Source: Phaeosaccion multiseriatum
Lineage: Eukaryota > Protista > Ochrophyta, other classes
DNA: 64,000 nt
Direction: 5' to 3'
Assembly: GCA_965112735.1 (NCBI GenBank)
Contig: OZ218950.1
Location: 3,038,001 to 3,102,000 of the forward strand
Below are positions 45,814 to 61,376 of this stretch, in pieces (positions within the stretch are counted from its first letter, which is position 1; every line of letters begins with the position of its first letter). The notes under the pieces were generated by a model, which saw only the letters and a program-made list of their open reading frames with translations, did not search any database and was not told the origin of the DNA. The translations under genes were made by a program, and so were the position numbers.

Positions 45814-46765
45814 TGGCGCCCCCTCACCCTACCCCTTTCCACACGTGTTCTGCGAGAGTTTGCTTGGCGCATCGTGTAACCGCATTCTCTTTCTGTCTTT
45901 TCTCTCTTGTCTCTCTTCTGTTTTCGGTACTGCTCAGCGAAACGTGCTCATCGCTACTGATGTGGCGGCTCGAGGACTCGACATTCCCAACGTCGACATG
46001 GTGCTAAACTTCGATATTCCCAGCCATGGGAAGGTAAGATAGACACGATTCACACTGATTTAAGACACAGAGTTCCTGTCTGCGTCTTTGGCCCGTCTTC
46101 ACTCGCCGCTACCTTTGCGTCCTTCTCCTCACTCTTCTCTCTCCCTCTCTCTGTGTGTGTGTGTGTCCCCTTCAGGACTACATTCACCGTGTGGGGCGCA
46201 CTGCTCGCGCTGGTCGCGCTGGGAGGTCCATCGCCTTCGTCACCCAGTACGACGTAGAGGTGTTCCAGAGAGTGGAGGTGAGTCAGGTACCAGCCAGAGC
46301 CAGGAGCAGATTACGTTCACTTCATCTGCGGGTGTGTGGTCTCTACGGCAACGTGTGGGATGTGGTGCGTGGGCGTGCACCTGTACCCCACCCCATACCC
46401 CTCTGACATTTGTGAATCGTGTGTTACTGCTTTTGCCTTCTTACTTCGTCCCTTCCCAGGGTCTCCTCGGTCGTAAGCTGCCTGCCTTTGAGACCGATGA
46501 GGACACTGTGCTTGTGCTGCTTGAGCGCGTCAACGAGGCTCAGCGAATCGCCACAAGAGAGATGAAGGAGATGGAGATTGAGAAGAGGGGGGGTGGAGCG
46601 AGGGGCAGGAAGCGAAAGGGAATGGGAGGGGACCGAGAGGGGAGCGGGGACGCCGAGGGGGGAGATGTGGAGAGCGCAGTGCGAGGCTTCGGCAAGAGGG
46701 GAGGAGGGAGGGGCGGGAGGGGTGGGCGGGGGGGAGGGGGAAGGGGTCGCGGGGGGAGGCGGTAG
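43806..46765 (+). CDS. RRP3: DEAD-box rRNA helicase RRP3/DDX47
   Basis: Q motif [28 protein letters not shown]|[65 protein letters not shown]. Acidic N-terminus and RGG tail. Confidence 0.95.
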
Positions 46766-47187
46766 CGCGGACGAGGAGCGCAGCTTGGCTGCGACGAGAG
46801 CGACGCATGGCAAGGAAGAGGAGCAGCAACAGTTGGTGATACGACAGCAGCAATGGGAGGTGGAATGGACCCAGGAGCTGGCAAGGAGACACGGCGAGGC
46901 GATGGCTGAGCTTGAGCCACCTACACCTCGCTCAGGCGAGGAGCGATGGGAAGCGCGAGCCGAAACCCGCGATGCTACTGGATTGGTGCATTTTATTTAC
47001 ACTAAGGTGGCTCTTTCTCAGAACGCATGCTTCTCTGCCTGCTCACCCCTCCTCAGAGCGAGAACAAGCAACGGCACGTCAGTCTTAGGCCTTCGTTCTT
47101 TAATCCCGCTGTATAAACATAAGCTATGTACACTGTGTGTGGGTGTGTGTGTGGGTGCCTTTCACGGCCGAACGGAGTTGACGGTTG

Positions 47188-48536
47188 CTACTCTGCTGCT
47201 ACCAAGAATGCTCCCTCTGCGGGGGGCTGGGTGGGGGCGGACACGGGGAGAAAGCACTCCTTCGGGTCGGCGAGAATCTCGTCCTCCCAAGCCCAAGCCC
47301 CTCCTCGCGGGCTTGACGAAGAGTAGGAGGAGAAGGAGGAGGAGGAAGAGCGGTCGTAAGACGGCGAGGAGGAGGAAGAGGTCGTGATCGAGTACTTGTC
47401 GTCGGGAGACAGCGAGTCGGACATGAGCCAGTCCCAAAGCCTCTCCAGGAGGGCCCCGCCTGAGGTGTCGCCACCGCTGCTGCTTCTGACCCTCGCTTCC
47501 CCCTGCTCCTGAGCGCTGGGGCAGTATGCGGGCACCTCAAAAAAGTTGTCCTCGAATGACATTGGTCGGAACACGCCATAATCGGCCCCGTGCACGCCTA
47601 GCGGCCTAGGCCTATTTTGGAAAATTCCCCGGCCTAGCGAGGGCCGTAGGCCCTCGGCCTATTTATAGGCCGCCTAGGCGGCGGCCTAGGCGGGGGCCGG
47701 AGGCCCGCGGCCTAGGGCAGACGCCAACTAGGCGCAGGTCCAGGGCGGGAATATGCTCATATGCCCCTGGGCTGGCCCGGAACCCGCCCAAGTGTCGTCA
47801 GTTTTAAGCAAATGTATTGCATGGGATAAGCGAGGAGTAGACTTGGTTCGTGTTGTCTCTTTCCGCCTCGCTGGCCCTACGAGGAGCAGGCTTACAGGTG
47901 TGCTGCTACCCACTGGCGCGCGCACGCACGCGCCCACGGTCACTGGGAGGCTGCCTAGAGGCGGGCTATAGGCCGCCTAGGGCTGAAAAGTGAGCGGCCT
48001 AGAGCGGCCGGAGGCCGCCGGCCTAGGCCTATTTCGGCCGAAGGCCGAGCGGCCTAGCGGCCTAGAGCCTAGGCCGCTAGGCGTGCACGGCCGGGGCCGA
48101 CCAGCCATAATCCTCCTGGTTCTTGTTGCCCTGAGTGATGGGTCAAAGCAGATGGACAATGAGTGGGACTGACAGGAAGGAAGAAGACTCAGGGCATCAG
48201 CCCGAGAAGCTGCAGGACAGTCTCACCTTTTGGTCAAGGGGGGTGACAACGCGTGTCGGCCGCTTGGGATGCTCCACTGTTTCGTAGTACTCGTGATCTT
48301 GAGTGACCCACTTGTTCGATAGGACGCTGTTCACCACCTGTGTGCCTTCGTAGGCGCCTCCCACAAACCAGTCCTGGGTGACGATACCGACGGGTAGCTG
48401 AAGGTACTCGCATGGACTGCCTGGTTTTGCTCATTGAACACCCAGCTATCGGTCCCACGAATGAGAAAGCTGGAATTTTTGCAGCATGCTCAAGCGCGGA
48501 GCGTCGTAATATTTGAGGATTTGCTGCGGTGGTCCT
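47188..48536 (-). pseudogene. Disrupted gene for an At4g14100-like (ependymin/LolA-fold-like) protein
   Basis: Reconstructed: LKYYDAPRLSMLQKFQ/FLIRGTDSWVFNEQNQ/CEYLQLPVGIVTQDWFVGGAYEGTQVVNSVLSNKWVTQDHEYYETVEHPKRPTRVVTPLDQK|GNKNQEDYG[MITE B]VFRPMSFEDNFFEVPAYCP. Two frame breaks at ~48410-48470 and an insertion in the last exon. The family call is from remembered motifs. The 5' exon may extend past MITE C to ~48970. Confidence 0.6.
47582..48100. mobile_element. MITE-like element B (519 bp)
   Basis: Perfect 24-bp inverted repeat CCGTGCACGCCTAGCGGCCTAGGC (47588-47611 / 48067-48090) with outer ends TCGGCCCC...GGGGCCGA. GCCATAA(TC) is directly repeated at 47575 and 48104. Subterminal CCTAGG/GGCC arrays surround a unique core. 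Confidence 0.85.
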
Positions 48537-48908: not shown

Positions 48909-49129
48909 GCCTGAGGCGGCCTGGCTGCGGCCGAAAGCAAGAAGCCGTGCGGGGGGCGATCCGAAACCATTTCCGAAGAGGGGAAAAGGGAATTGAAAAA
49001 ATTAAATTAAAAATTAATTTTAAAAACATAATCATGAAGCCAGGCAGCACTCAGCGCACAGGGAAAGAAAGACCCGGAGGGGGGGGGGGGGGGAATTGGT
49101 GCGCAGGGAGGGCACTCATTATTGTTGGC

Positions 49130-49488
49130 ATGTCTAGCATGCCTGGGAGAGGTTCCCACGTTGGTGAGCGGGCGCGCTCTCGGTCCCGTGTATTGTTTAG
49201 CACGCTCGTGCTTTACCTCTTCGGATTGCCCTCGCCAGCAGCAGGAAGTCCTCCAGCTTCCTTCGGTTTCTCCCCATCCGCTCACCATGTAAGAAGGAGC
49301 GCCCCTCGTGTGACTTGGGTCTGAATTCTTCACTTTGCCCCCATGAAGAACTGGCTGCGTAAAACCCCTTCCTGCGCTCCTCCCCCTTCTTTGCTGCATC
49401 ACTGGTGTGCCTTCACTTGGTCCGTGGAACATGATCGCTCATGCAAAGTATTTGTACCCCCCTGATCTCCCAGACGCGCTGGAAAGGT

Positions 49489-49520
<32 letters not shown>

Positions 49521-52500
49521 ACAACAGGTCCCACCAGCAATTGATTCCGATGGGGCGAGGTTCAGTGCCCTCTCCTACCTCGTAGGAGGCCCCTCGAAGG
49601 TCTCCACCTTCTTCGAGAGCAAGTACGGGGCGCATTTCCTGCATCGCAGTGCCTTGGGCAGAGCTTCCGTGACTCAGGCATACTTGGACGCCAATAGCAC
49701 TTCGGCCGCTGCTGCTGCGGCTGATGGTGCTTGGAAGAGCAGCACCCACGCGTTGTACAATGGCGGTCTGGGCGTATCGGCCTCCGGATCCACGGTTCTG
49801 GTGAACACCTTCCCGCTTTCTGTTGCTGAGGTGAGGAAAGATGCCCAGCCACACACAAAAGAGCGGCACCAGCCAGGCCAATTCTTATCCCTTCTTCCCT
49901 CCCTGCCTGCTGCCCGTCCGCGCTGCTGCTTCCCACCCAGCGTGACCTGGAGCCCCTCATCCGCCAGAACGAGGTCCAGTTCAGGAGCTGGGGAAGCAGC
50001 ACGGCCATGCCCGCAGATATGACGTACGAGGCCTTTGTGAAGTTCGTCGAGGAGGACAGGAAAGGCTCCGCGGTCATCACGGTTCAGAACGAGGCGAGCA
50101 TGTCGAGTCAGCTTCAGAAGTTCCACCGCGAGCTCCAGGAGCAGCTCAGCCTTCCTGTGAGGTAAGCGCGCGCCCTCCTCTTTCTCTCACACACACTCAC
50201 TCTCTCTTTCTCTCTGTCTATCGGTCTCTGTCTCTCTTCCTCGGCCGTATCTCTTCCTCGACGTCATAGCGAGAACCCCCCCCCCGTAGCAAGTGTCGTG
50301 TCTTGACTTATTGCCTGACGAAGTGGGTCCTGTAGGGGGTGTATATCTGGCCTCCTGCCAGCCTACGTGTCTGCCTGCCTGCCTGCCTGCCTGCCGGCCG
50401 GCCGGCCGGCCTGCCTGTCTGTCTGCCCACTTGCTTGCGGCCTGTATGCCGGGCTGCCAGCCAGACTTCCGCCCCGGGAAACATGGCTTACGCATTGCAT
50501 GTCGTCTCGCTCACCCGCCTCTCCTCCCTTCCGCTTCTTCCTCCTGCTCTTTCTTCCTCCCTCCCCCCCCCCCCCTTCTCCCTGTCTCCCCCCCTGCGTA
50601 TGCCTGCCGGCCTGCCACTCTGTCCACCCATCTGCCCCTGCCTACGTCCCCGACATGATCGGCGCTCTCTGTCTGTCTACCGCACCCGACCCACCCCACC
50701 ACCAGCATGAACGTTTGTAAGTCCGCCACGGCGTTCTTGGAGTGTTTTCCTTTCACCTTTTTGTCTTTCCTCCCGAGCAGGACAGTGTGTAGTGCCATTG
50801 ACAGCAGGGTGTAAAGAGTGTAACTGAGTATCCGCCACAGAACGTTATCAGACGCAGAGGCGAGAGCCAATGGCCAACAAAGGAGACCTACAACGCCATG
50901 AGAGGAGAGAGAGAGGCAGCAGACTCGTGCATTCTCTGAACCCCTTTTTCTTTTTTTCTCCCTCGCGATTTGCCACACACAGATCACTCCGGCCCTGAAG
51001 CAGTGGCGCTCAAGCCGCACACAGACATGTACGATGTCTTCGTGGTGCAGCTGCAGGGCAAGAAAGAGTGGGAGCTCTGCATGCCCTTCGCTGATCTCCA
51101 GGAGGTGAGAGAGCGCGAAACAGGGGGGTGTGAATGGGGAGGTGGGGGGGGGGCGCGCGGGGGGGGGGGGGGGGGCAAGCAAGGCGCCAGGGAGCGAGAA
51201 CTGTCGAGATGAATATCGGTCTTTCTGACTCTATCTTGCCACAGCCAGTCATGTCTGACCTTCATCCTGCCTCGTCCTCGTCCTCTATACCCTTCGCACC
51301 TCTGTCTGTCAACCCAATGCTTTGACCACTTGCAAAGTGGCAATCCTCCCTGTCGTTTGCTCGCTAAATGTCCCTCTTGCTCTCCCCCCTCCCCGCCACA
51401 CCACCCACCCTTCGTCTCGTGTCGTGGCGCCTCTCGCAGGAGCGCAGCAAGTACCCTTCCCACCCCTTTACAGCGGCAGACTTCTCCGATATGGTGAGGA
51501 AGGAAAGTTGCACACATAACAACCAACTCCCTCCCTTCATCACCCATAGGCTAGACTCTGATCTTTTTGCTGTGCCTGCTCTTGCTTTTGCTGCTGTCCA
51601 GAGTGGTTGAGGTTTAGTCGTCGATGCTAATCATCTCTCTCTCTCCTTGTCCTCTGTCTCTCCCCTTTCGTGACTCAGATGGAGGCAAAGATGGGGTCCA
51701 TCGAGGGCTGCACGACGCACCTCATTCGAGACTCGATGCGCTGCTCGAATGTCAGCATGACTGTCGGGGACTCGCTTTACCTCCCCAAGGGCATCGTACA
51801 CTCGGCCACGGTAAGCCCACTTCCGTCGTTCCGTCGTTCCATCGTTCCTTTCTTTCTTCTCTCCCTTCGCTCGCTTCTTCTCCCTTCCTCTGCCTCTTCC
51901 TTCCTTCCTTCCTTCCTTCCCTTTCTCTCGTCCTTTTCTTCCCCTCTTCCGCCCTTGCTTCCCTCCTTCCCTTTCTCCTTCCCTCCCTCCTAGTCCACCC
52001 TCCGGCCGCCCTCACTCCTGCCCTCCCACCCACTCTCCATCCCTTCCTTGCGTCCTTCCCTTCCTTCCCTTTCTTCCTTCTCTTGCCTCTCTCCCTTCCC
52101 TGTCTACCTCTCATCAATGTACCCTCCCTTCCGCCGTCCCTTCCTTCCTGCTCGCCTTCCCTCCTTCCTTCCATCCCTCCTTTCCTTTACTTCCTTCGAT
52201 CCATCAACTGTTCCCATTCCTCCGTGTGTCCTTTGTGCGTTCCCTCCCTAACCCCTTCCTCCCTCCCCTATCTGCGTGCCCACTGCGCATACCTGTTGCC
52301 GGCCCTCTTCGCCACTGCTGAAGACGTCTCGAGGGTACAATGTCTCTACCCACGTGACCCTCGCCCTCCACCGTGACAACCTCGCCTTTGGTGACCTCCT
52401 CCGTGCTTCCCTCTTGGTACGTGAGACTTGCCCCCCCCCCCCCCCCGACTCGCTTGTGGTGGCTGCTCGGCTCCAACCCGTTGAGGAGGCGATGTGGCAG

Positions 52501-55500
52501 AGTGCACTATGTTGGTCTGGCTGTCGTTGACGTTTCCTTTGTCAGACTGTTCTTGTTTGAAAAGGGGGCACAGTCCCATATCATCTAGCGTGTCTGCCTG
52601 CAAGATCTCCCCCTTAATAACCCCTGTATAAACCCCCCCACCCCCCGCCCCCCCTCTCTCTCGCAGTCGTACAGCCAGGAGGTCTCTGTCGAGCCCCGGC
52701 TCTACGCTGCCGCCTTCCGCGCCATCGACAAGATTGTGCACTCGCCGGTTGAGGGTCTGGGCTGGCGGCGCGTTCTTCCCACTTCCATCCTGCCTTGTGC
52801 CACGACAGCTGCTGCCTCGCAGATGGCACCTGACGCTGACGAATCGTGTTCTTCCTTCGCCATCACGTACTTGACCGACGCCCTCTCCAAGATGGTTTCC
52901 GAGCTGACCCCACGCGCATGCGAGGCAGTCAACAACGTGGAGGACCAACTGGCCAACGAGCAGTACGGTCTTGAGAAGACATTGCCCTATCTTGCCGAGG
53001 CGACAAACGACTCCGAAAAGGCCCTCGACACCTTCCTGCAAGCCTTCTTGTCCGCTATGACCGACGAGCGAGGCCGGCGTCTACAAGGAGCCGTCACTCT
53101 GCTGCTGACAGACGCGTGAGTGAAGTGAAGGAGGTCCAGTTGTACATTTGTCCATACGGCATACTTGAGGTGCAATCCATGCCACATCCCCCTCCCACCC
53201 CACCTCACACACGCACGCACGCACCTCGTTGTTTAATCCTCTCTCCTTCTCCCTGTCCGTCTCAACCTGCCTGAGTATAGCGAGTGGGCGATACGAGCTG
53301 ACCGACTGGGAGGGCTCAAGAGAGAAGTAGAGGACAACGGAGACGCCATCGAACACCACCAGCGAGAGATCATCGATTCGATTCGGCCTCCGTATTGTCC
53401 TCTGGAAGACGTTTTCCAAGACTCGAAATTCGACGCGAACATACACCAAAACGGCCCGCGACGGAAGCTCGGTCCTGACGCCAGCAGCGGAAGCAAGTCC
53501 GCCGCGAAGCGACTACAAAGAGACTTCGATGACATGACGCGCAAGATATTGGAGGAAGTGGAGAACCCACGCATAAGCGGCATCGAGTACCCCGTCATGA
53601 AATCGTGAGTGGGGGCTGAGTTTGGCTGGGCGGGGATGGGTCGGGGGGAAGAAGGCATGCGGCGAGCCATGTATGTCTGCCCACCACTCGCACCTCCCTC
53701 CCCCCCTTCTCTCTCACTCTCCACCATGCATCTCTGTTCTTGATCTTTGAACTGGCTGTGTGCGTGGCCGCATGTTTCCAGGATGGTCCAGCGTTCCCGA
53801 CGACGTCTCAGCCTCCCAGAGGAGGAGAGGGCAACGGCGAAGACGTACAACGAGCATGGAGAGGACGACGATGACCCCATGCACCACCCGCACCGAAAGT
53901 TGGAAGAGATTTCCTCGGAATGCTCCGACGTATGCGACGTCGTCGCAGATATATGCGAAGTTGGATGTGAAACGTTACGCTTGGCAGCAGAAGTAGCAGA
54001 AGGCGTCTGCAACGTCGCTGCCGATCTTTGCGCAGCACCCTGCAAGATTGGGGGAAAACGCTGTTCCTGTGATGGCTCTTGTACCCGTGAGTGATTTCGT
54101 CCACTGAACTGGGGCCCCCTCTGCGGCAAGCATCCTTCTCTTCTCCTCACAAAGCTTCCCGCCCATTCTCCTATCTCACAGGAGACTGTGACGGGAGAAA
54201 GATTCTGAGCTGCGATGCGGGCGGGCGCTGCTTCCGAGGTTGTAACGGGGGCTGCCTTACGGGTGAGTTGGGCGCAACAACTTTGGTCTTCGTCTTCTTG
54301 CCCTTCATAGACTAACGAACACGCTGCTTCCCTCCCGTCTGCTCTGCAGGCTGCAACTTTTTAGGGAAGAACTGTGACTCGGGATGCACGCGCAGCTGTG
54401 ACCGCAGTTGTGTCCGCACGCAATCTTGCGACCAGGGTATTACAAGCTGCGACGGACAACCGTAAGTTAATAGCACACACATGTACACGCGGCGCGAACT
54501 CCAACTTTGCTGTGAACCCGAGCCCTTTTGGTTGCAACACGCCCACATTTTCTCCTCAGGTGTTCTAGCTAAGCAGCTCTCTCCACCCCAACCATGCTAA
54601 CCTATCCCCTCCCAACCCGTCCTATTCCAGTTGCTTTACACAGTGCAACTCCTATTGTGGTGGCCAGCAAAACTGCATCAATTATTGCGAACGGGCGCGG
54701 GGAGACTGTACAAGTGCAACGGTCACTCCACTCTTAGATCTCGAACAAGAATGCGGAGATTTCTGCGAGCAAAGCAAGGGAGTGTGTAACGTAAGTTAAA
54801 AGGCGGGGCCAATGGAGGCGCGTGCGTGGGGCTCGAGGCGAGGCGAGGCGAGGCGAGCCTAGCCCCCTCCCACTAACTCTCTATCTGCTGTGTATGAGAT
54901 CCTCCTCCCACTAACGAGTTGTTGTTTGTTTGTCTGAGCTTACTAGCTGCAGCCAGTGTGTCTGAGCCTCCTCCCCTTTTCTCTCTGTATGTCTCGCCTC
55001 TTTTTTTGCATCTCTCTGCGTGGTGGTCCCGCACAGAGCGTCTGCAAGACTATTCAGGGAGTCATCAGTTATTTCAAGGATGATGGGGTCAACGAGAACA
55101 TGACGAGCGCACCACCACAGATCAAAAACGGATTTAAAGACCTTCTGGGGCATGTGGTGGACTGGATGCAGGTACGTAAGTAGCTATGAATTGAGGGCGG
55201 GTGATCCTTGCTTGGAAGTTGGAAGATACGCCCCCCCACCCCCCACTAACGTGCCCTCCCCCTCTCGGCTTTCAGTCGGAGATTCAACTTTTCGGTGAAT
55301 GCCAGGCGGACACATTTCTCTTCATGTACAAGGGAATAGTGCCCACGTTTGCCTGGCTGGCGGACAACCGTCCATGGAACAAGGTCATGGAGGATCCGCG
55401 TCCGCTGGACGGGTTAGAGCCTCGCGACTGCGGCAACTTCTACGCGGTAGCAATGCTCGTAACTCTCTTTTTGAGTCCCTGGAACGCCGTGGGTCAGGGG

Positions 55501-56311
55501 CTGGGCCCCTTGTCTATGCTTGGCCCCGGTACGTCTCAGGGTAGGCTTTTCCTCTTCCTTTATTATATACCGCTACTAGCTAAGGAAGGGGTCAAGGGGA
55601 AGAACGTCGCCCTTCTCTTCTTTATTGTTATGTGCTTGCCATTTCATCTTGCCATATCATTGTCCTGCCCCTTGCCTGCACTGCCTGCCTAGGCTTCTTG
55701 CTCGGCATGGGGGGCGTTGAGTTCACCATTGGTTTGGGATCGGCGGCGACCAAGGCGTTTCACACCGTCCTGCTCGCGACGCCTGGTTTCAGGGACTACT
55801 TTGGCTTTGGCGGCGAAAGTACCGTCGAGGCCGTCGAGAGTATTGGTGCCTTCGCGGCAAACGATATCGATTTCACCATCGGCTTTTGGTTGGACAGCGG
55901 CACTTCCCTTCTCGATGTTTTCAGAGACCCCTTGAGTCTCTTTGAAGACCCCTTGAGTCTCCTCCGAGGGGATAAACAGAAGTTGGTTGCGACCTTTTCC
56001 ACGTGTATGTCGAGAGCCATTGGAGCCGACGGGGTAGGCCCGTCGAGTGGTGCGGCTGTCTCCATGGCAATTCTTGGATCAGACAAACTGGCTGGGTGGA
56101 GCACCGTGGTCGGAGCGGGGATTAACTTTAACTTGCTGACTGGAGGAAGAGTACCCTTTGAAGTTGGATTGGCGTTCGAGTTCGTGGGCGGGATAGACGC
56201 TGGTCCTTTACAGCTCTTTACAATCTCAGCTGAGGTGAGTTGGATATAGCTATCGTCCCGCCGCGCTGGGGTAGGTAAGGCCGACCCCAAAAGTTCTCAT
56301 CCCCTCACCCT

Positions 56312-56345
<34 letters not shown>

Positions 56346-59300
56346 GGCCCTTTCTCTCTTCCGGTTGGGGGTCTGGAACGCACAGCTGGAGGCCGACTTG
56401 GGCACTTCGCCCCTCACCTTTGAGACGTCCCTGTGCCATACGTGGGCAACAGATATCGGCGATCTGGCGAGCGAAGTGAGTGATGACATCAACGCCAAGA
56501 TACAAGACCTCCTAAGCTTCATCCAAGGAGAGGGGGTTGTTATCGAAGGCAACGGGCTGACGGACGCCCAGCAAGCCAACCAGGACCAGTCGCGAGAGGA
56601 ATTCGGGGGACTGCTCAACACACTTGGCGTCTCCTTGCTGGTGAGTTGTGAGTGGTGAGGGACATGGTTGGTACTACCTGCCTGCCTGCCTGCCTGCCCT
56701 TATACCTGCCTACCTGCCCTTATGCCTGGCCGTGTCTGCGGTTAGCTTGGCCATGCGCTATTCTCCGTACACACCGTATTGTGCACTCGCTCACTCTCGG
56801 ATTGTTTCCCCTGTCTGCCATCCGCCCCTACCCCCTTCCACCCTCCGCCTTCCGCCCAAGCAGGGATGCAAAACGGAAGGGCAGGAGTGTAGTGGCGGCC
56901 TTGAGTCGGGAGAAGACCTTGCCGCTTTCTTTGAAGAAGAGTACTCTGGAGCTAACCTGGAAACTCAGACGGGGCCGGTTTGGGGTCTCGAGGCTCAAGC
57001 GCAATGGTGCTGCGGCGACATGACCTGTGGGTTTGTCCCAGGTGCCGACCCAGGATCCCAACGACGTACGTGCCAGAAATGTGGCATTCAATTTCACGGT
57101 TGCAACCCCGATGCAGACCGCCCGTGTTGCTCCGACACCAACATTTGCGTGCCTCGAGCGGTATTGGAGATCCAGGGGGAGGCTCAGCCCACGCCCCTGC
57201 ATGACGCTGACTTCTATTGCATCGTAAGTATCAAGCAAGTTGTTGCTTGACCGGTGGACTGACTTGGCTACTCTGTGGGGGGATCGAAAACTTTGGTGGA
57301 TATCTTCTAGGGGCTGAAAGTACGACTTTCCGACGCTGTCTTGGGCGGCAGTGACGGCGGGTGCACAAGCCAACTCTGACGTCCGTCACTCCCTTCCTTT
57401 GTTGCTCTTTATCTTCCCCGCCCTCCCCTCCGTGCATGGCCTTCTTTTCGAAGCCGTGCGTCAGATCACTCCCGAGGATCAGTTCCAGTGGCCGCTCTTC
57501 CTCTTCTAGTCCTAGTACTATTCAGTACGCGGACACCTTTTTCTCCTTCTCCGAGTATTTTGGGGAGGGGTTGCACTATGACTCTACCTTCCACAACTAT
57601 GAAAACGAGGAGCAATACCCCTACCCTCTCATCGACTTCAACGAATGCAGGGAATACGAAGACCCCAGGGACGGATTCGGACAACAGAATACCTGCTGCG
57701 ACCGCGCTTCGAGCTGCGACACGGACTGCGACCAGATGGACCCCAGCAACGGCTACAATTCGAGGCGGCTTACGGGGGTGGAGGAAGTGGAGGAAGTCGA
57801 GGGTGCCTCTGTTAGTCCCTCTTCCCAAGGCCCTGACAGTCAACCACCAGAGTCTGGGCAGGCAACAACACCACAGCGCCAGGAGAGCCTGGAGCAGCAG
57901 GAGCAGCGGCAGGAGGCGCTGCAAAGTCAAAGAAGAAAAAGAAGAGCTTTGTTGCTGCAGAGTCAAAGAAGAAGAACTTCCTTGGACTTACTCAACGAGG
58001 AAGTGTTCGAGAATAAGTGGGAAAATGGTGAGACTCACCAGATGAGGGAGGTTGCGAGAGAGGAGAGTGGGGAACAAGGGGTGCATGTTTGCTTTCACTT
58101 TTGCTTCGCTATACTCCTTCCGCTGTCTTCTCTGGCAATTGAAACAAGCCTCATTCTCCCTCCTCGTCCTGAAATGTGCTGCCGTCCCTAGCCACCGATT
58201 CAGTTCCTGCCTCCGACAAGGAGGCTGACGAAAACTTGATCCAGCTCATCAAGACCGAGTTCGAGAGCAGAGAGTGAGTTGAGTGGGGGGGGGGGGGGGG
58301 GAGGGTAATGGTTGGACTGCTCGTCGAAGTCAGCGGCCGGCCGTGATTCACTCACTTGGCGAAGCAAGAAGCTTTGGTTGACTCTCCTTCATCTCCTCTG
58401 CGGAGCATCCTGCTGTACGCACTCCTGACTCATCTTGCCTCTGTGCGACAGGCCCGATGACATTCCACCCGAGGAGAGACCGGCCGAAATCCCACTAACG
58501 TTTGAGGCTGCCCTGGAAGACTACGGAGGCCTTGCTCCTCTTGTCGGCCTCGACGAGCCCGGACGTCCCACTAATATAACCTTCAGCGTAAGTTGCTTCT
58601 GCTGGCTGCTTCGGCTGCGCGGACACACACACAGAAAGAGAGAGGACAACACGAAGCTTTTTGCCTAGCTACTTTTGTTCTCTTCTCTCTTGCCTCTCTT
58701 GCCTCTTCTCTTCTCCCTCCCCTGCCCTGATCCCCCGCCCGTGCCGCACCCCCCGCCCCACACCTCCCTCCCGCACTCGCAGGTGCCCGTTGTCACGTTC
58801 GAGGACGCGCCATACTCGGCCCAATACGGTGATTCCGTAACGTTCGACGCGAGCGGCACCTACGATCCGGACGGGAGGGAGATGGTCCTGGGCTGGCTTG
58901 TCGCAGATCGAAATCTCGGCTGCGAAGGCCTCGTGTGCACCTTCCTGGCCTTTGAGGTAGGGGTGCTCGAGGTCAGCCTTGAGGCTTGCAACACGGCCAA
59001 GCTCTGCAGTCAAGCCGAGACTATGCTGACCGTTGAATCGCCGCCCCCACCGCCGGCTGGACAGGTGAGGTACAGGGCAGCTAGAGGGGTATGGGTGAGG
59101 TCGGTCGGGCGATGCGGTGAGAGAGAGCAGCAGAGCGGTGGTAGAGAGGAGGAGGGTGCGACATGCATGGGCGGAAAGAGAGGAGGGGAGAGAGAGGCAT
59201 GGGGTGAGAGAGGAAGAGGGCGAGGGGGAGAGAGGGAGAGACAGGAGCGAGTGGGTAGAGCAGAGAGAGGGGGGGTAGAGGGAACACCGAGAAGAAGTCA

Positions 59301-61376
59301 TGATGCAGAGGGGGAGGGAGAGTGGGAAACACATGGATGCATAGCTGTATAGCGTATTCCCAGCCTGTGTCCCCCCCCCTCCCCCACTCCGCCACATATA
59401 ATTTTGTGCGTGTGTGCTTCGCTTGCTTGCCTCACCCCATGATGTGATCTGATCGGTTGTCATCAGGGGGAGCCGCAAGCTCTGGTGCTGGACGCAGGAG
59501 AGCCTTACACCATCGCCAAGCCTATGGGCGTAAATTCAGTAACATTCCAAGCCCAGGCGAGCGGGGGTGCCCAGCCTGCGCTGTACCGCTGGCTTGTGGA
59601 CGGCGTCCAGCTGGAAGGGGAAGGATGCAACACCTCCCAGTGCACGTACACCCCCTTAGACACTGCCCCGGTGGGGGAAGCGCTGCGGGTGGAGGCCATC
59701 GTCTGTACCACTGAGGCAGTGTGCACCTCCGACCTTTCCTCAGTGACCATCCTCACAGACAACGACGACATCAACAATCCAGGCGGCAGTGGTGATCCCA
59801 TGATCTTCGGTCTTCAGCAGCAAGTATTTCTCTTTGAGGGGCGTGACGAGCGCTGGTACAATGGAATTACGAGTCCCAGGGTTGACCTGAACTGGAAGCT
59901 GAATGCCTTCCTGGAGTGTGAGAACGGCCTCAACCCGGTGAGTGAGTTGCGCTGCCTGCTTGTCCTCGGACTACAGAGTCTCTTTCTGCTTCCTACACTG
60001 ATTTTGCTGTTTTTGTTTCCTCCTCCTCCTCCTCCTCCTCCTCCTCCTCCCCCACCCACCTGCCTGCCTCAGACGTACTTCACTGCCAACGCCATGTCGC
60101 TCAAGAACAAAGACGGTTCCGTGGCGGACCGCGTCCTTATCGAGGTGATGGACAGGGACGTCTTCTTCCCCGGCTGCCCGCTCGACGAAGAGGTGGAGTC
60201 CTGTCTGGCCGAGGGCAACCTGCGCGTTGTGCTCAACGAGGAGATCATCACCAAGCCTGGCGCCTATGCCCTCAGCGGAGGGGGACTAATGTATGTATTC
60301 AACGCGTACGGCCCGTGCACCTACAAGCGAGACGTGCATATGGAGAACGACCTGCTCACCGAGAAGAAGCGTTTGACTGAGGCGAAGCTCCTAGAGCGGC
60401 GCCGCCGGCTGGTGAGTGAGTGAGTGAGTGAGTGAGTGAGTGGGTGAGTGGGTGAGTCGAAATCAAGTGACGCAGGCAAGCACGCACGACGGAGCCGCTC
60501 TCGCTCAAAGCCGCACAAGGAGGGAAGCCTTTCTTGCTCGTCTTTGTACACACAGCGAACACCCCTGACGGAAGTTGATACCTTCGTGTATATGTGTAAG
60601 TAACTGGTGCTTAACTTTGTCCCTTTTGCTCGCCCGCCGTAGACGGATCTTGATCCCTCAGGCCATGATGCGCTGGCCCTCGTTCACTCTCGCCTGTCCA
60701 AGTTCGAGGACGGGGCGGCCTGCCTGCCTTGGTACGACGAAAAGATGAAGACCGGCGAGCTGTACCAAAAGAACGGCGGCTGGGCCTCCGTCTACATCGA
60801 GACGGTGGACTCCTTCGACTTCCACATTGAGTGTGAGTAACCTGCTTCAATTGGCTTGCATTAATTTTGATTCCAGAGGGCGTGGCTGTTGCGTTTCCCA
60901 TCCCACGTGAGGCTTCTTGATTTCTTGCCGGTGTTTGTCCCGATACACACCTGACATACCTTGTCCTCCGGCCGACCTCGGAGGCCCGCGACTTGCGAAT
61001 TGAAGCTCTAATTGCCTGCCCCTGCCTTGCTTGGCTTCGACTTCGGATGTTATCGACCTGACCAACTCATACGTTCCTCCGACGCCGACCGTTACACGAC
61101 CGTTACCCCCCCCCACACGCGCACACGATAGATCGCCAAGAGGTGGAACGTTGCCACTCGCATTCCATAGACACTTTCATTGTCGGCTACCCCACCGACA
61201 CCGACACCGACCTGACCGAGTGGCAGGGCGTGCTGGGCGAGACGAGGCAACTCAAGTACAACACCTTCACGGGACAGCCCATCCTGCGCGGCCGCGAGCA
61301 GGTTCTCAGTGGGTCCGACGCCTCCTACGAGGTTGAGGGCCCGTGGAGTTTCGACTTTAAGGCCCGCAAGCAGTGA
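49130..61376 (+). CDS. Giant (~2100 aa, ~27 exons) secreted multidomain protein: signal peptide, cupin_4/JmjC oxygenase, Cys-rich region, knottin-like, PKD-like, GDP-type VWD/root-cap-like C-terminus
   Basis: All exons can be joined in phase with GT-AG junctions and no internal stop. Hydrophobic VLFSTLVLYLFGLPSPAAG leader. JmjC motifs TFFESKYGAHFLH, SMNVYHSGP, PHTDMYDVFVVQLQGKKEWELC, VGDSLYLPKGIVHSAT, STHVTLAL. PKD-like VTFDASGTYDPDG. Tail motifs GSGDPMIFGLQQQVFLFEG and GVLGET...SYEV. Confidence 0.8.

Follow-up and report, generated by a model that had tools for sequence, protein, structure and literature searches.

In the CHCH (twin-CX9C) and twin-CX3C (small Tim) proteins, a helical hairpin is held together by nested disulfides and the cysteines are equally spaced on both helices. 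The cysteine motif of granulin/epithelin is almost identical whether read forwards or backwards and forms a laddered disulfide stack; it contains CC doublets, and neighbouring hairpins are paired. The alpha-hairpinins are plant peptides of the pattern C1X3C2XnC3X3C4 that adopt a helix-loop-helix fold with the CX3C motifs on two antiparallel helices, and their cysteines are often the sole conserved residues (PMC11591084). Beta-hairpin cystine-ladder peptides (tachyplesin, gomesin, theta-defensin, hepcidin) consist of one hairpin with one to four cross-strand disulfides (PMC13001179), and in the bacterial copper storage proteins Csp1 and Csp3 cysteines with i, i+4, i+7-type spacing line the inward face of the helices (PMC7558416). 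Here we analyse a stretch of 64,000 nucleotides (the window, to which all positions refer unless stated otherwise) of the ochrophyte Phaeosaccion multiseriatum (GCA_965112735.1, contig OZ218950.1, positions 3,038,001 to 3,102,000, forward strand), which encodes a predicted domain of 176 residues whose 32 cysteines are spaced with near mirror symmetry (53921-55045). This cysteine pattern is real and unusual. In the likeliest reading, the domain would extend the principle of the alpha-hairpinins (PMC11591084) and the CHCH/twin-CX3C proteins to many more rungs, with inner CX3C units that would either extend or cap the ladder.

Comparison with described cysteine-rich hairpins

The outermost cysteines of the domain (C1-x3-C2...C31-x3-C32) have exactly the CX3C...CX3C motif of the alpha-hairpinins, and the next ones inward (C3-x3-C4...C29-x3-C30) conform to the same C-X3-C-Xn-C-X3-C pattern. 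However, alpha-hairpinins are free, short peptides with four to six cysteines (two to three bonds), whereas the 176 residues and 32 cysteines described here are internal to a giant algal protein, lack sequence similarity to alpha-hairpinins and have a fold that is predicted. With the CHCH and small Tim proteins the domain would share the helical hairpin design, and it has the equal cysteine spacing on two arms; those proteins, in contrast, are small, contain two bonds and reside in the mitochondrial intermembrane space. The predicted tip (C13-C16, loop, C17-C20), in which three CX3C motifs flank a six-residue loop and the inner-left cysteines are of one parity, resembles the beta-hairpin ladder peptides. 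These are cationic and only 16-25 residues long, whereas the tip belongs to a much longer chain. Csp1 and Csp3 likewise have helices with a cysteine-lined inward face, but they are four-helix bundles whose thiols are kept reduced for Cu(I), and they are unrelated to the domain in sequence. The direction-symmetric motif is also found in granulin/epithelin, which differs in its CC doublets, absent here, and in its non-nested pairing.

When the five exons of the domain were searched separately against Pfam (E<=1), no family was found. The profiles left unmatched by any exon include CHCH and small Tim, Csp and metallothionein, as well as EGF, laminin-EGF, furin-like, TNFR, granulin and other extracellular cysteine-repeat domains. 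With every profile test failed, the domain appears lineage-restricted and outside every described family, and we regard it as a novel variation on a structural principle that is already known.

Mirror symmetry of the cysteine spacing

Region 53400-55600 consists of short exons between GT-AG introns. Splicing five of them in silico (E1-E5, 53782-55171) gives a single open frame, with all 32 cysteines between 53921 and 55045:

53782-54086, + strand: E1 (acceptor CAG, donor GTGAGT); acidic/basic linker at 53783-53917, then C1-C10 from 53921
53921-54064, + strand: left arm, C1-C8, within E1; predicted amphipathic helix with a cysteine stripe
54182-54262, + strand: E2 (GT-AG junctions); C11-C15 and most of direct-repeat unit A
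54350-54461, + strand: E3; C16, apex loop NFLGKN (54355-54372), C17-C22 and the start of direct-repeat unit B
54631-54790, + strand: E4; C23-C31, right arm, interrupted at TVTPLL between C28 and C29
55037-55171, + strand: E5; C32 (55043-55045), which ends the domain, then a linker to the next module

The spacings between consecutive cysteines are 3,6,3,13,6,3,6,1,3,3,7,5,3,3,3 on the left and 3,3,3,5,6,4,3,3,5,3,6,14,3,6,3 on the right of a central spacing of 6, which is the loop C-NFLGKN-C between C16 and C17. The number of cysteines, both lists of spacings and the loop had been reported in a first-pass annotation of the window and were reproduced identically from the five-exon model. Compared as mirror images, the two lists have an L1 distance of 6 and 10 of the 15 spacings are identical; in direct order the distance is 32. 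In a permutation test of the symmetry, as the annotation had called for, the observed symmetry was reached with the right-hand spacings permuted in 9 of 1,000,000 trials (P=9e-6), and with all 31 spacings shuffled it was reached in 0 of 200,000. The outer seven spacings alone give an exact P=0.007 and the inner eight alone P=0.018.

If the cysteines are paired in nested order from C1-C32 inward, the sums of the paired positions (i+j) are 269, 269, 269, 269, 268, 268, 268, 269, 267, 267, 266, 267, 267, 267, 267 and 267. A constant sum characterises the nested cystine-ladder hairpin, which is a structural class and not a sequence family, and here 16 of 16 pairs fall within 266-269. A fold-back (antiparallel) arrangement is the simplest reading of this constancy, and the nested topology is plausible. 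A palindrome or duplication of the DNA as the cause of the symmetry was rejected, as no inverted or direct repeat underlying the cysteine pattern was detected at the DNA level. An inverted DNA repeat could not yield a protein palindrome anyway. The outer arms, C1-C8 and C25-C32, are mirror-related and not direct repeats: their L1 distance is 2 in mirror order versus 18 in direct order (P=0.007), and there is no sequence similarity between them.

Predicted helical arms

Plotted at 100 degrees per residue, the cysteines of the left arm (C1-C8, 48 residues) occupy an arc of 60 degrees (R=0.94, P=1e-5 versus random placement), and the best-fitting period is exactly 100 degrees. Because all eight share one arc at this period, we read the left arm as a probable amphipathic alpha-helix with a one-sided cysteine stripe. 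The stripe lies at 23 degrees, while acidic residues point toward ~150 degrees and hydrophobic residues toward ~290 degrees. Combined with the mirror relation of the outer arms (P=0.007), this one-sided stripe is non-trivial evidence for long-range antiparallel pairing. The helical base proposed in the first-pass annotation is thus supported by the stripe, and AlphaFold2 (AF2) models of single exons, computed with no alignment, lend weak support to helical arms. For the cysteine part of E1 (53918-54085) residues 3-39 were modelled as helix and for E4 residues 2-8, 13-22 and 36-48, both at a low predicted local distance difference test score (pLDDT) of ~55. Two-chain modelling of the cysteine part of E1 with E4 (ESMFold2) gave a score of 0.02, with a partner pLDDT <50.

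An internal direct repeat and possible local pairing

The inner half (C9-C24) is 22% cysteine and rich in Gly, Asp, Ser and Asn, and the eight inner-left cysteines share one parity (period 2). Parity and composition would fit an extended or irregular structure of the tip better than a helix. The inner half also contains a direct repeat that had escaped the first-pass annotation. A stretch of 32 residues, which begins with the Ser that precedes C9 and ends at C15, aligns with the one that runs from the Ser preceding C19 up to C25, in a common pattern of the type SCD.SC...CD..I.SCD.G..CF..CN..C. The repeat score is 82, compared to 35.3 +/- 8.5 in shuffles with fixed cysteines (z=5.5), whereas the mirror partner read in reverse shows no similarity (z=-0.5). 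The two units are:

54065-54255, + strand: unit A, 32 residues with seven cysteines, spanning an intron
54394-54658, + strand: unit B, 32 residues with seven cysteines, spanning an intron

The repeat is ancient, because no DNA similarity is left between the units. Their spacings (3,3,7,5,3,3 and 3,5,6,4,3,3) are nearly self-symmetric, and the duplication therefore yields much of the inner palindrome automatically. This divides the earlier interpretation, which had taken the near-palindrome as evidence for nested pairing of all cysteines: the antiparallel fold-back is supported by the constant i+j, but the inner part of the palindrome is partly a by-product of a duplicated self-symmetric unit.

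Two topologies are consistent with the inner half. The units may pair antiparallel with each other, which would create a pseudo-twofold hairpin with a full 16-rung ladder; the nested set of pairs is closed under the repeat mapping. Alternatively, each unit may close on itself and form a small three-rung hairpin on top of a helical clamp made by the outer arms. On present evidence, one 16-rung ladder is indistinguishable from a helical clamp with two local mini-hairpins.

Given the inner direct repeat, local pairing is a live rival to the full nesting. The two 32-residue CX3C units and their flanking helices could be independently folded tandem modules with short-range disulfides (e.g. C9-C15, C10-C14 and C11-C13, with corresponding pairs in unit B) and with no long hairpin, and the mirror would be a side effect of the duplication. 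The contrast between the direct repeat and the dissimilar reversed partner would be expected from such modules, runs of CX3C are trivially palindromic, and the inner symmetry taken alone only reaches P=0.018. Granulins, too, show that a symmetric cysteine motif can occur without nested pairing. However, tandem modules leave the mirror relation of the outer arms, which lack mutual sequence similarity, unexplained, and a cysteine stripe on one side of 48 residues needs a partner surface. Moreover, the seven cysteines of each aligned unit are an odd number, and no exon matches any cysteine-repeat family in Pfam. We regard independent local modules as doubtful, if well worth keeping in view; should the units fold locally, the domain would simply be a new lineage-specific cysteine-repeat domain.

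A proposed cysteine-stapled fold-back domain

The reading that we tentatively favour, and place just short of probable, is a cysteine-stapled fold-back domain whose outer helices pair antiparallel via their cysteine stripes in nested order. This self-contained domain would sit within a large, probably secreted protein, flanked by the acidic linker on one side and by a variable downstream module on the other. In the N-terminal arm (C1-C8), every cysteine would lie on the same face of a long amphipathic helix. The arm at the C-terminal end (C25-C32), with its mirror-image spacing, would run antiparallel to this helix, so that the cysteine stripes face each other and the arms are cross-linked in nested order from C1-C32 inward. 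In the glycine-, aspartate- and serine-rich inner half (C9-C24), the two homologous 32-residue CX3C units would either continue the ladder to the NFLGKN apex, giving 16 rungs, or form two local ladders atop the clamp. The cysteines would serve as a fixed scaffold, while the face away from them and the following module evolve fast between the two copies of the gene described below.

Several observations weigh against this fold-back. The spacings 14 and 5 of the right arm correspond to 13 and 6 in the left arm, and the cysteine stripe of the right arm is broken (R=0.68, P=0.02), with the break at TVTPLL between C28 and C29; C29-C32 alone give R=0.93. The inner direct repeat (z=5.5), with its self-symmetric spacing, inflates the global palindrome, and duplicated units usually fold alike and locally. 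The single-exon AF2 models reach a pLDDT of only ~55. Only two sequences exist, too few for an analysis of covariation between mirror positions. The exon junctions lack RNA support, the public sequencing runs that contain the stretch being all DNA, and E1 itself has no signal peptide, which makes secretion dependent on a putative fusion to the upstream JmjC_2 gene.

A more far-reaching version, which we consider rather unlikely as a whole, is a single-chain, 16-rung nested cystine ladder. It would form a hairpin spike of ~10 nm, helical at the base and with CX3C motifs at the tip, and act as the rigid, fast-evolving recognition stalk of an inverted, diversifying giant gene pair, possibly made with its own JmjC oxygenase targeted to the endoplasmic reticulum. 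If true, such a spike would by a wide margin be the longest disulfide-stapled hairpin described. A real ladder would mean that a design otherwise known from tiny peptides and small mitochondrial proteins, with two to four nested disulfides, has been extended to as many as 16 rungs. It would also be a natural long, covalently zipped hairpin, a rigid and hyper-stable scaffold of interest to protein designers.

Divergence between two inverted copies

The organism's own genome (67 Mb) contains exactly one other copy of the domain, located ~65 kb away in inverted orientation and ~97% identical in nucleotide sequence. Beyond the two copies, the same genome gave only three weak matches, which are unrelated frames. 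The second copy is part of an inverted segmental duplication, 15 kb or more in length, that extends from window position 49097 to at least 64000, past the window end, and corresponds to G000:C1:3031168-3016280 on the minus strand with 96.6-98.2% identity. The two copies are arranged head-to-head, ~56 kb apart, and the duplication carries the whole gene from the JmjC to the PKD-like part. Separately, a segment of 1.1 kb (window 46443-47583) is 96% identical to G000:C1:3013168-3012053, which lies beyond the paralogous copy and is out of line with the main duplication.

Within 53921-55045 the paralogues differ by 28 substitutions in 528 exon positions versus 3 in 597 intron positions (Fisher P=4e-7), and the introns also hold one 3-nt indel. 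Approximately 25.5 of the exon differences are non-synonymous and 2.5 synonymous (per-site proportions pN 0.062 and pS 0.022). Nevertheless, the paralogue keeps 32 of 32 cysteines, every spacing and 10 of 10 splice dinucleotides. The probability that 28 random substitutions spare all cysteines is P=0.006, and 0.001 if the absence of stops and of new cysteines is also required. The differences comprise 11 non-synonymous and 0 synonymous changes in E1, 5.5 and 0.5 in E2, and a single non-synonymous one in E5; the NFLGKN loop is kept except for K to R. The RKL site, which the first-pass annotation had placed directly before the mature chain, is unsupported as a maturation site; the acidic/basic linker is identical in both copies, which has little weight at a background divergence of ~0.5%. 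From the hairpin through E8 there are 63 non-synonymous versus 7 synonymous differences (ratio ~2.5, P=0.008), of which E6-E8 contribute 36.5 and 4.5, whereas changes are sparse or mostly synonymous in the JmjC exons upstream and in the PKD-like exon downstream.

Across window positions 53900-57800 the copies diverge 5-10 times more than in the flanks, almost only in exons; the JmjC exons are free of differences. Judged from these substitution patterns, this segment is a putative hypervariable module under diversifying selection. In the left helix, the ten variable positions are concentrated around ~232 degrees, on approximately the opposite side to the cysteine stripe (P=0.012). The comparison thus points to cysteines conserved as a scaffold and to an outer face that diversifies, and fixed cysteines combined with a fast outer face suggest a rigid stalk that might present a recognition surface. 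Such a combination in two inverted copies resembles recognition molecules that function in self/non-self, gamete or pathogen binding. To our knowledge, almost nothing is known of such molecules in stramenopile algae.

Exon model and searches for relatives

The exon model was based on splice consensus, the open frame, the comparison with the paralogue and the symmetry itself. All five junctions are canonical GT-AG (donors GTGAGT, GTGAGT, GTAAGT, GTAAGT and GTACGT; acceptors all CAG), and introns 2-4 contain CTAAC-like motifs. The first-pass annotation had argued that the symmetry supports the exon assembly, and this was borne out: the spacing mirror crosses the exon junctions and therefore speaks for the assembly, and the paralogue differences, sharply limited to the predicted exons, back the model independently. 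Four public runs (one sample) contain the stretch; they are DNA contigs that cross the introns without joints, and their differences from the window are those of the paralogue.

The cluster searches with E1 and E7 (180 residues, part of the downstream module) gave no relatives. E1 had no match in a set of clusters of 5.8 billion proteins, among eligible candidates of 55-177 residues only, and E7 had no true relative among 1.84 billion representatives. Weak matches of E7 (E=6e-5 and 1e-3) lie in unrelated repeat proteins and were judged spurious. The ESM Atlas returned nothing usable for the cysteine part of E1 and for E7, and no PDB sequence matched the cysteine part of E1, E3 or E4 at E<=10. 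A scan of metagenomes with a degenerate cysteine pattern was uninformative, as the inspected in-frame matches among those listed are cysteine-dense, mostly low-complexity frames of the (TGC)n/(TGT)n type.

These null results in the protein, PDB and ESM Atlas searches would also be expected if there were no real product, that is, if the exon chain had been mis-assembled from open frames or the locus were an untranscribed or decaying duplicate. The lack of an RNA run that contains the stretch points in the same direction, as does an open frame of 305 residues on the opposite strand that overlaps E0-E1. However, five strong GT-AG junctions yield one open frame, the copies differ almost only in the predicted exons with no stop, indel or lost cysteine there, and no other frame shows the symmetry and the helical stripe. 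An artefact of this kind is very improbable in our view. The antisense frame (window 53233-54150, minus strand) was rejected as a real gene, since no Pfam family matches it and the pattern of selection agrees with the + frame; it probably arose as a side effect of GC-rich coding sequence.

Gene context, probable secretion and possible metal binding

Further predicted elements of the gene lie on both sides of the domain:

49130-49250: candidate signal peptide; basic RSRSR, 13 hydrophobic residues, then PSPAAG
50940-51209, 51631-51990 and 52589-53115: JmjC_2 oxygenase exons, the first two with Pfam PF08007 matches
53281-53607, + strand: E0, with predicted in-frame splicing to E1 (53607/53782) and to the C-terminal JmjC_2 exon (53115/53281)
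E6 from 55276, E7 55693-56234 and E8 56386-56640, + strand: orphan glycine-rich module, hypervariable together with the hairpin

The Pfam family PF08007 (JmjC_2) matches at 50940-51209 (E=9.7e-9) and 51631-51990. The JmjC_2 exons, of the ribosomal-oxygenase type, can be spliced in frame onto the cysteine-rich protein and are a candidate fusion, the locus comprising one gene or two. The signal-peptide-like start at 49130 is located 33 bases inside the duplication boundary at 49097. Secretion of the domain, and with it the disulfide chemistry, is likely but dependent on the putative gene fusion. Downstream, E6-E8 match no Pfam family, and hydrophobic stretches in E6 and E7 are borderline (19-residue Kyte-Doolittle means of 1.2-1.5). 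In 58675-59349 and 59485-60420, PKD_4 (E=0.045) and a plant cysteine-rich domain (E=9.4e-5) matched below the cut-off, which hints at an extracellular C-terminal part.

Alternatively, the domain might reside in the cytosol as a helical hairpin or bundle that is lined with cysteines, has a metallothionein-like tip and stores or senses soft metals such as Cu(I), Cd or Zn, by analogy to the Csps, which bind Cu(I) via cysteine thiols lining a helical bundle (PMC7558416). The antiparallel geometry would account equally well for the symmetry in this case, and the cysteine content and Gly/Asp/Ser-rich composition of the inner half are metallothionein-like. E1 lacks a signal peptide, and its upstream in-frame partner belongs to the JmjC_2 oxygenases, which normally reside inside the cell. 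However, the domain contains no His, Met, CC or CXXC and a single CXC (C8-S-C9), it matches no metal-binding family in Pfam at E<=1, and an excess of non-synonymous over synonymous divergence (dN > dS) would be unusual for a metal store. The signal-peptide-like N-terminus at 49130 and the extracellular appearance of the downstream modules, with further cysteine-rich stretches and the weak PKD-like match, also speak against a cytosolic location. Rapid divergence together with likely secretion favours disulfides over Csp-like reduced thiols, and we consider metal binding improbable. A (GT)n microsatellite occupies 56304-56352 in an intron, and the public contigs break there.

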